A stretch of DNA of 64,000 nt. It comes from Tubulanus polymorphus. Its lineage: Eukaryota > Animalia > Nemertea. Where the stretch lies: the NCBI RefSeq assembly GCF_964204645.1, contig NC_134030.1, positions 3,638,778 through 3,702,777 on the forward strand, in the 5' to 3' direction. Shown here one piece after another: positions 18,127 through 23,441 of the stretch. Under the pieces are notes generated by a model. That model had not been told where the DNA came from and ran no database searches. It was given only the letters and a program-made list of their open reading frames with translations. The position numbers and the translations under genes were made by a program. Numbering within the stretch: position 1 is the first letter of the stretch; every line of letters begins with the position of its first letter.

Positions 18127-21100
18127 ATGCCAATCATGGCAACTCAGAATTCTGTGAATCACTCCTCATCATCTACTGCTGCCGTAGTAATGAATAATGA
18201 CAGCAGAAAGTTGAAAAATGAGGTGGCTAATTCTAACAAGTAAGTATCGAGCATTTCGGCTTTAAATGCCTTATAACCCTTATAAGGTCGATAAGATACA
18301 CGATATCAGTGAATTCCCACAATCAGTTCAAAAAAATACAATAAGTTCTTATAGCAAATGAACATACATTCGAGCTAATATTCGGCTTGATACTGATAGC
18401 GTTTAAAATAATCAAATATCAAAATGCTCTCAAGTATGAAAATAATTTCTAGTTCATTTTCGATAAAACTAATATCCTTTAATGTCATTACTTTGATTTC
18501 GTAGAAGACCACTTGAATTAGTAATTTCTGATGGTTTGTACTGATTGATTGTGTTGTGTATTGTTATTTGTAGGGATGAAGGTTGGAAGTCACAGTTGAA
18601 GCTACCACCAAAAGATCATCGTGTTAAAACGACTGTAAGTATCTGGAAAATAGGCGTTACATGTTTTACGGGTCCTCGAGATATTTGAAACTGGTGAACC
18701 ACCTGACTGTTGTCGAATACAAATGATGAATTCCTATCCAGTCAGTTCTGCTACTGAACTAATTGTGCTGATATTAATGGATCTGATTATTTCGACAGGA
18801 TATATTTTAAGTCAAATCACTCAATTATATTGTATTTCTGGTTTACCTATGACATGTTATCGACAGTTGGTTGACTGTCTGTCAAATACGAATGATGAAT
18901 TTCTATCCAGTCAGTTCTGCTACTGAACTAATAGTGCTGATATTGATGGAATCTGATTTTCAACTGAAGATGCTTGATGATTTGATATATGGGGCGCTGG
19001 CACTAGATGGGGCAATCAGTACATTCAGCTGCCTTGTTAGCTGTTTCAAAGATTATTTGTCATAAGTTCCTGGCTGCTTTCATAATTCATTTATTTTGTC
19101 GGTTTCAGGATGTAACTGATACTCAGGGCAACGAGTTCGAAGACTACTGTCTCAAACGTGATTTGCTCATGGGAATATTCGAGAAAGGCTGGGAAAAACC
19201 GTCACCGATCCAGGAGGCTAGCATACCAATTGCTCTCTCCGGTCGCGACATCCTCGCCCGAGCCAAAAATGGCACCGGTAAAACCGGTGCTTACGCAATC
19301 CCGATACTAGAGCGTTGTGATCCTACGAAAAATTTTGTACAAGGTTCGTATTGTTTGGATTTTTTGTAAAATTCCGGATGCAGTTAAAACCCAGTCATTC
19401 ACTGAGAGTTAAATTAATGTGTTTTCAACCCAAATTTTAACCTCGAACTATAAACCTTCTGTCATAAATGAATTGTTAAATCATCAATTTTGGGTTTTTC
19501 TCACAAACTCTGAATACTGAGATCATCATCAGTTTACCAGAAACCCTTCAAACTTCAATGAATTATATTTCTAGTTGTATCAGTGGATTTTAGACGTGTT
19601 TAATGTTGTTATTGTAGCTCTGATAATTGTTCCGACTCGAGAGTTAGCGTTACAAACGAGTCAAATTTGTAAAGAGTTGAGTAAACATATTGAATGCGAC
19701 GTTATGGTCACAACCGGAGGAACGAACCTCAAAGATGATATCATGAGACTCTACGAACCAGGTACGTGTATAATCAATGTCCAATGTTCTCCATGCTGGA
19801 AGGGGCTGCATTTATTGTTAAGGGGGTCATTCATTTATTACGTACGCATTAGGGGAGGGGGAGGGGTCAGTGCAATTGCGTACTGTAATGCTTAATGTAT
19901 ACGAAAAAATGGCCGATTTTGCGTACAGAGGGGGAGGGGGGTTGAAAAATTCAAATTTTATGGGTTCGTAATTAATGAATGATCCCTAAGTGTATAACAT
20001 CGTGGCTACTGAAGTAGCAAGGCTTTCAGTCTCCCAAAAAAATACAGAAACTTCACCTTAATTTTAGTGTAATCTTCTATTTCTGTTCTGTGGCAGCAAG
20101 GGGTGGCTGACTTTCTGAAACCTGTTGTGAAGAACACTGGTGTCGAATACGAATGATGAATTTCTATCCAGCCAGTTCTGCTACTGAACTAATTCTAATT
20201 GTGCTGTTATTTGTGGAATCTGATTATTTCGACAGGATTTATTTTAATCCAAATCACTCAATTATATTGTATTTCTGGTTTACCTATGTTATCGACAGTT
20301 GGTCGACTGTCTGTCATATATGCAAATGATGAATTTCTATCCAGTCAGTTCTGCTACTGAACTAATTGTGCTGATATTGATGGAATCTGATTATTTTGAT
20401 AGGATTTAATTTGATTCAGATTAAGCGGTTGTATCATATTATTTCTTATCACATTGTCTCTATAAATTTTTCCGTCGTGTATAGTTCATGTGATGATCGC
20501 CACTCCCGGACGAGTTCTCGATTTACTACGTAAAGGCATTGCACAGTGCGGTAAATGTACGATGATGGTTCTCGATGAAGCCGACAAACTCCTGTCGCAG
20601 GACTTCAAAAATATGCTCGACGATATCATCAGTTATTTGCCGAAAGAACGTCAGATTTTGCTCTATTCGGCTACATTTCCGTTGACTGTTGAGAAATTCA
20701 TGGTAAGCGTTCATAAACCAATTTCAGTGCTATCGATATATTCTCGTGGGCATATTCTTGGGAATTTCAAAATATTATTTCTCTGTTTAGATTTGAGTAT
20801 TTAGAAAATAGATCAATTTTCATGTAATGCGGAAAGTACTTGGGGAAATCATTTTACGCTTCATGCTAGCATAGTTCTTGGATTTCAATTCCTTGCCTAA
20901 TGAAAACTTTTTATAGCAATTTTCCTTGAAAATCACCTTCATCATGCAGTCACCAATAATATCCTATCATCCATGCAGTGCGATGGTATCCTTTCACGAA
21001 GGCCCCATTTCCATTTGGAAAAATTTGAAAATCACCCACGAAATACTTGGGAAAAACTGTCGTACTTTCGAATTTATGTTACTGTTGGTACAATGATTCT

Positions 21101-23441: not shown

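Follow-up and report, generated by a model that had tools for sequence, protein, structure and literature searches.

What do two snoRNA genes of one kind produce when they share an intron, and how does the same pair come to lie in three introns of a single gene? We address this question for the DDX6 gene of the nemertean Tubulanus polymorphus, using a window of 64,000 nucleotides (NCBI RefSeq assembly GCF_964204645.1, contig NC_134030.1, positions 3,638,778 to 3,702,777 of the forward strand; coordinates are those of the window unless a locus is named). Three introns of this gene each hold a cassette made of a putative box C/D small nucleolar RNA (snoRNA) gene, a linker and a second copy of the snoRNA gene. 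We consider it probable, from the sequence and its comparison with other loci, that the pair arose by tandem duplication, spread between introns by gene conversion and yields separate snoRNA products.

The copy inventory is based on a repeat search, alignments and direct reading of positions 18500-22800. An element of ~72 nt occurs seven times on the + strand, with six of the seven copies paired in three cassettes of ~245-250 bp (snoRNA, ~95-nt linker, snoRNA) at 18711-18960, 20141-20395 and 22373-22615. The start-to-start distances inside cassettes 1, 2 and 3 are 169, 173 and 163 nt, respectively. The seventh copy, which is absent from the initial annotation of this stretch, is unpaired. Naming each intron by its flanking exons and the first and second copies of each pair a and b, the elements are as follows:

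18718-18789, + strand: snoRNA copy p1a, first of pair 1, intron A/B (Rfam RF00476, 40.4 bits; repeat family D1; predicted terminal stem)
18790-18886, + strand: linker 1, hairpin at 18862-18879 (alignment; fold -8.4 kcal/mol, z -1.37; 3 genomic occurrences only)
18887-18959, + strand: snoRNA copy p1b, second of pair 1 (Rfam, 39.6 bits; fold)
20148-20226, + strand: snoRNA copy p2a, intron C/D (Rfam, 28 bits; alignments)
20227-20320, + strand: linker 2, hairpin at 20294-20311 with loop GGUC (alignment; fold)
20321-20393, + strand: snoRNA copy p2b, intron C/D (Rfam, 39.9 bits; repeat family D3; fold)
21138-21210, + strand: single snoRNA copy, intron D/E (Rfam, 39.5 bits; fold)
22380-22451, + strand: snoRNA copy p3a, intron F/G (Rfam, 41 bits)
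22452-22542, + strand: linker 3, hairpin at 22515-22532 (alignment; fold)
22543-22614, + strand: snoRNA copy p3b, intron F/G (Rfam, 36.6 bits; fold)

The initial annotation had described the same ~245-bp unit in three introns, and both the repeats and the alignments agree with it at these coordinates. Alignment of the cassettes starts abruptly at TGTCGAATAC, 12 nt 5' of the first C box, and ends a few bases 3' of the second D box. Among the three cassettes, first copies are 93-98% and second copies 95-100% identical; identity among the linkers is 87-94% in the 5' part and 97-100% in the last 30 nt, which include the hairpin, bearing out the earlier observation that linker and hairpin are kept in all three (87-100% overall). 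Relative to linkers 1 and 2, linker 3 has a 4-nt deletion. The 50 nt flanking each cassette are 26-53% identical, the level of a forced alignment of unrelated sequence. Because the snoRNA sequence, searched by BLAST in the 268-Mb assembly, matches at these seven places only, and a genome-wide search with the linker gives three matches only, the three cassettes themselves, the units are not a dispersed repeat; nor are they chance resemblances. DNA contigs of run X1 (~20-24x), which break at repeats, confirm the window sequence. In the same run, position 20279 in linker 2 shows T>G at a depth of 9/27, which is either a heterozygous site or a contig cross-placed from another cassette.

To which family do these elements belong? 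At Rfam gathering thresholds, there was no match in the whole window, while a permissive search aligned each of the seven copies over its full length with RF00476 (snR61/Z1/Z11, in the clan with SNORD38) at 28-41 bits. The SNORD38/snR61 identity that the initial annotation had proposed to check against Rfam was thus upheld at the permissive level but not at the cut-off of 45 bits. In the DDX6 copies, the guide core and D' box are identical to the RF00476 model consensus. Across the seven copies, no variation is seen in the C box (AUGAUGA), the guide core, D' (CUGA) or D (CUGA), whereas the flanks vary. Each copy has one guide, located 5' of box D'. We located the genome's own ribosomal DNA (rDNA) with RF02543 and used 15.7 kb of it for guide pairing; the first pattern matches for a ribosomal RNA (rRNA) target, in L001 and L004, were discarded as not being rRNA. 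The guide pairs with the genome's own 28S over 12 bp (11 Watson-Crick pairs and one G-U) at AAGC[A]GAACUGG, with guide position 5 opposite the bracketed A, and an equally good pairing anywhere in the 15.7 kb is reached by only 19 of 1000 shuffled guides. The duplex exceeds the 10 bp to rRNA that are asked of a box C/D guide, the fifth position of which faces the nucleotide to be modified, and rRNA pairing, the other check proposed for snoRNA identity, came out in its favour.

By structure and predicted target, then, the seven units are SNORD38/snR61/Z1-type box C/D snoRNA genes. Through this guide, fibrillarin would be expected to 2'-O-methylate the bracketed A of AAGC[A]GAACUGG in 28S. Human SNORD38A/B, hosted by RPS8, target A1858 of 28S (PMC3766210). 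The predicted 28S A is the known site of the family, the equivalence to human A1858 following from family assignment rather than from an alignment with human rRNA.

The copies differ in what surrounds these conserved elements. Copy p2a carries a U-to-C substitution, the sole guide change among the copies, which turns the G-U pair into G-C; it also has a 6-nt insertion after D' and a degenerate C'. Of the 10 positions that separate C box and guide, 3 are different in the single copy, whose boxes and guide show no difference from the others. External terminal stems of 9-10 bp enclose p1a, p2a and p3a, that of p1a being extended into the flanks as TGTCGAATA / TATTTCGACA (18711-18800), and the single copy has an 8-bp stem (CTGTCG.AG / CT.CGACAG). 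The second copies sit ~90-150 nt from the 3' splice site, and a clear stem is found only in p2b, which retains TGTCA / TGATA. In p1b, which lies ~150 nt 5' of the splice site, the terminal stem is weak or absent, and p3b has only a distant external stem (AATATG / CATATT). Assembly of intronic C/D small nucleolar ribonucleoproteins (snoRNPs) can be supported either by an external stem or by such a distance from the 3' splice site.

How did one layout come to occupy three introns? About 60 nt on the 3' side of p2b (20396-20455; repeat family D3) are homologous to the start of the linker, and the duplicated unit would therefore be a snoRNA with its spacer; in introns A/B and F/G, homology stops right at the second snoRNA. 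We propose that a single tandem duplication of a snoRNA and ~95 nt of downstream spacer would have created the two-gene cassette, and that DNA-level exchange among the snoRNA copies of DDX6 would then have carried it into two further introns. Whether by gene conversion or by templated repair of breaks, such exchange, with its end points in homologous snoRNA sequence, would copy the linker along with the snoRNAs and leave the outer flanks unrelated. The differences private to one cassette are clustered: in the first copy for cassette 2, in the 5' part of the linker for cassette 3, and, for cassette 1, at the end of the linker and in the 5'-flanking sequence of the second copy (Kruskal-Wallis test on their positions among the three cassettes, P 0.007). 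Shared derived states are in conflict: in the a copy they unite p1a with p3a, but in the sequence just 5' of the b copy they unite p2b with p3b. Conflicting shared states combined with segment-wise private differences are what is expected of exchange among copies, and it is from the homology boundaries and these patterns of difference that we infer the route. The earlier suggestion that the cassette was copied from intron to intron as a unit agrees with the abrupt end of homology at its outer ends. Retroposition of a dicistronic RNA was considered and is unlikely, the flanks being free of A-tails and target-site duplications and all copies lying in one gene in one orientation.

Elsewhere in the same genome, an intron of PSMD3 contains 16 alternating C/D units, and an intron of the EF1-beta gene contains four units ~235 nt apart, with neighbouring spacers 85% alike. 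Several snoRNAs per intron with co-duplicated spacers are normal in this genome. The vertebrate baseline of one snoRNA per intron, against which the initial annotation had set the locus, is the wrong yardstick where intron arrays of 4 to 16 snoRNAs recur.

A covariance model built from the DDX6 copies and run over the genome found an eighth, diverged paralogue at G000:C12:3555103-3555174 on the - strand (L042:5104-5175). It scores 46.8 bits against RF00476, above the cut-off of 45, and has a 7-bp terminal stem and the guide of the DDX6 copies; the latter are therefore not the genome's sole source of this guide. Directly downstream of the paralogue, on the same strand, are four mir-92-like hairpins (L042:4054-4114, 4173-4236, 4557-4635 and 4967-5041); they are sub-threshold matches, the best reaching 37 bits where the cut-off is 47. 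The surroundings of the paralogue show no coding host, and the region may be one non-coding host transcript with the snoRNA and a microRNA cluster. A location in RPS8, as for human SNORD38, was rejected: matches to Ribosomal_S8e are on C5 and C8.

For the linker, the feature that calls for explanation is the hairpin GACAGTT-GGTY-GACTGTC, a 7-bp stem with a loop of GGUU or GGUC found at the same place in all three cassettes. It folds at -8.4 kcal/mol with z scores of about -1.4 to -1.7, and 11-23 of 200 shuffles fold as well. The hairpin regions differ at one position, in the loop. The stem is invariant and thus without covariation, and it provides no evidence for or against selection on the stem. 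Its arms have counterparts outside the hairpin. TCGACAG, a motif present 3' of p1a, p2a and the single copy, returns as the 5' arm of every hairpin, and this arm (CGACAGT) repeats the 3' terminal-stem half of those three copies. The 3' arm (ACTGTC) repeats the 5' terminal-stem half of the single copy and is also found upstream of p1a. CGACAG, a 3' stem half, lies 4-6 nt 5' of ACTGTC, the 5' stem half of the next unit, and with the two placed so close together a hairpin would form automatically. Local alignments of each linker with the snoRNA units were no better than those of shuffles, and we discarded the idea that the linker is a decayed third snoRNA; the resemblance is limited to the common TCGACAG motif. 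The linker is most likely a passenger spacer. The special role that the initial annotation gave to the hairpin is not supported for a structure that is short, not unusually stable, invariant in its stem and unlike a known RNase III signal, while the caveat it attached, that linker similarity could reflect recent duplication, offers the best reading.

What the cassettes produce depends on how the two snoRNAs are parted. After splicing, each snoRNA would form its own snoRNP, the first copies relying on their long external stem and the second copies on their position 90-150 nt from the 3' splice site. The spacer would probably be cut by an endonuclease and then trimmed back, as the intronic arrays of 4 to 16 genes in this genome must also require. 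A genome with conserved guides confined to long intronic arrays has to be able to separate the units, and an endonucleolytic cut in the spacer is therefore expected. Each copy thus most likely gives a separate ~72-nt RNA.

Several points weigh against this account of the locus. The seven DDX6 copies score below the RF00476 gathering score (28-41 versus 45 bits). A runs test for a mosaic pattern of differences was not significant (P 0.12). Copies p1b and p3b, which have no convincing terminal stem, may be dead or give little RNA. Conservation is somewhat higher in the final 30 nt of the linker (1 difference in 30 nt) than in its 5' part, which could reflect weak constraint rather than closeness to the b copy. 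Finally, we know of no enzyme that cuts intronic snoRNA spacers in animals.

Three other explanations were considered. If the linker were left uncut and trimming stopped at both snoRNPs, each cassette would give a stable ~245-nt RNA, a miniature snoRNA-capped long non-coding RNA (sno-lncRNA) with its own function or active as a guide in that form. Two snoRNAs in one intron are the stated prerequisite for such RNAs (PMC4234469), the homology of the cassettes ends exactly where the RNA ends would be expected, and all three cassettes retain the linker, which has no match elsewhere in the genome. The whole cassette, however, has no unusual structure (fold z 0.04), its linker identity does not rise above the level of young duplicates such as the EF1-beta spacers (85%), and the conserved guide types in introns of 4 to 16 snoRNAs would be useless here if units were inseparable. 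We regard such an RNA as unlikely, and slightly more so its fuller version, in which three stable ~245-nt RNAs with a snoRNP at each end come from every DDX6 transcript, the cassette boundaries result from selection on the RNA or copying through it, and the hairpin aids assembly. The hairpin has also been a candidate for a dedicated cleavage signal of an RNase III-like enzyme, of the kind that Rnt1p recognises on yeast polycistronic snoRNA precursors, and the processing of such yeast units by RNase III and Rat1p is on record (cited in PMC2780460 as its reference 48). Conservation within the linker peaks in the 30 nt around the hairpin (97-100%), the sole difference being in the loop. Known RNase III substrates have stems far longer than 7 bp. 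The long stable stem and AGNN tetraloop of an Rnt1p-type signal are both missing from this hairpin, whose -8.4 kcal/mol is equalled by 11-23 of 200 shuffles and whose loop is GGUU or GGUC; the stem is without covariation, the arms are explained as copies of terminal-stem halves, and the EF1-beta and PSMD3 spacers that we inspected have no comparable hairpin beside the next C box. A role as cleavage signal is accordingly the least probable of the three.

It is also conceivable that snoRNA comes from a subset of the copies, such as the single copy and the long-stem first ones, or from the C12 paralogue alone, with the rest being young pseudogenes. The absence of terminal stems from p1b and p3b, the insertion and degenerate C' box of p2a, and the presence of a better-scoring paralogue elsewhere (46.8 bits) are in keeping with this. 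Against it, every copy has perfect C, D and D' boxes and guide, the lone guide change, in p2a, improves pairing, and the differences of the single copy, 3 in the 10 positions separating C box from guide but 0 in the boxes and guide, are those expected of selection. We hold mostly dead duplicates to be improbable, on a par with the three-RNA version above, and retain separate snoRNA products from the duplicated copies as the probable outcome.

The host assignment comes from exons that were translated and searched one by one, not joined into a spliced protein. They match Pfam DEAD and Helicase_C, and the solved structures closest to exon B are DDX6/p54, CGH-1 and Dhh1 (E 1e-36 to 1e-27; other DEAD-box proteins ~1e-15). 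On these matches, the host gene is DDX6. Its exons within the region are:

19109-19343, + strand: DDX6 exon B, with the Q motif and motif I (Pfam DEAD; best matches in PDB are DDX6/p54, CGH-1 and Dhh1)
19618-19761, + strand: DDX6 exon C (Pfam DEAD)
20485-20702, + strand: DDX6 exon D (Pfam DEAD; tblastn maps)
21430-21558, + strand: DDX6 exon E (tblastn against relatives, 80-89% identity)
21962-22142, + strand: DDX6 exon F (Pfam Helicase_C)
22724-22878, + strand: DDX6 exon G (Pfam Helicase_C; start exact, end set by the limit of the protein match)

The snoRNA pairs thus lie in introns A/B, C/D and F/G and the single copy in D/E, all on the host strand (+), and each pair constitutes an intronic snoRNA cluster in the sense of two or more snoRNA genes on the host strand of one intron. 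The numbering of the paired introns as 2, 4 and 7 in the initial annotation corresponds to A/B, C/D and F/G, given one further upstream exon. Intron C/D also contains, at 19796-20000, an element resembling a MITE, in which terminal inverted repeats are combined with G-rich inner blocks. The depth of its words in run X1 is ~137,000, versus ~22 in adjoining sequence, marking a very high-copy repeat, and several X1 contigs omit parts of it. Upstream of DDX6, coiled-coil-like open reading frames (ORFs) on the - strand at 15160-15732 suggest a divergently oriented neighbour gene.

Is the arrangement shared with other animals? Searching the exon-B ORF against a protein collection and taking the contigs of the matches gave us the DDX6 loci of six other invertebrate assemblies. 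In three of the six, a lone SNORD38-like snoRNA, oriented like the gene, lies within a DDX6 intron (L018:14775-14859; L043, from 15570; L046, from 15994); none was found within reach in the DDX6 loci L021, L045 and L047. In L018 and L043, the snoRNA lies inside an intron that splits the window's exon D; in L046, it lies inside intron E/F. According to tblastn maps, the intron splitting exon D (20485-20702) is present in five relatives (counterparts at L018:14375-15875, L043:13464-20124, L021:12963-14127, L046:14044-14599 and L047:16603-17963) and absent from the window gene, in which the introns flanking the fused exon D both carry snoRNA copies. A DDX6 intron of L021, from an assembly without a SNORD38-type copy, contains a SNORD101-like C/D candidate at 15750-15827 (+), scoring 30.9 bits against a cut-off of 47. 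Searching a spurious ORF that spans snoRNA, linker and snoRNA against the protein collection gave no candidate for an orthologous cassette. Among the loci compared, the tandem pair was seen in the window's genome only, the relatives' copies being single. From these loci, DDX6 appears as a recurrent invertebrate host of the SNORD38-type guide, with the intron used varying, and the paired arrangement as a lineage-specific amplification of a known layout.

The locus is a clear case of many snoRNA genes packed into single introns in a spiralian, unlike in vertebrates, and two identical snoRNAs 95 nt apart offer a compact substrate for learning how animals separate intronic polycistronic snoRNAs. 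SNORD116 sno-lncRNA linkers span kilobases, whereas the linker here measures ~95 nt. The sno-lncRNAs of the Prader-Willi SNORD116 locus likewise have two snoRNA genes per intron, their prerequisite (PMC4234469), but the genome-wide abundance of arrays here argues for unit separation. Closer in spacing are the yeast polycistronic precursors, cut by Rnt1p and trimmed by Rat1p, in which short spacers between tandem C/D snoRNAs likewise need cleavage; these are independently transcribed, whereas the DDX6 cassettes are intronic. The yeast Rnt1p spacer signals are long stems with AGNN loops, which the 7-bp hairpin does not resemble.

Intronic snoRNA gene clusters have been described in rice and Drosophila (PMC2780460). 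As here, the clusters of rice and Drosophila melanogaster have several snoRNA genes per host intron, were built by local duplication and require more than exonucleolytic trimming for unit separation; what differs here is the repetition of one cassette in three introns of a single protein-coding host in a spiralian invertebrate. Human SNORD38A/B (U38), yeast snR61 and plant Z1/Z11 (RF00476/RF00212, clan CL00051) share with the DDX6 copies the box C/D architecture and the guide core, CAGUUCUGCU with D' CUGA after it, and hence also the conserved 28S target A. The DDX6 copies are shorter (~72 nt), have no second guide and reach sub-threshold Rfam scores. They also differ from human SNORD38 in their host, DDX6 and not RPS8, and in number, with eight genes per genome and three tandem pairs (PMC3766210 for the human genes), the recurrence of DDX6 as SNORD38-type host in several invertebrate genomes standing against RPS8 in human. 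In its snoRNA family, its intronic layout and its likely evolutionary route, the locus belongs to known kinds.

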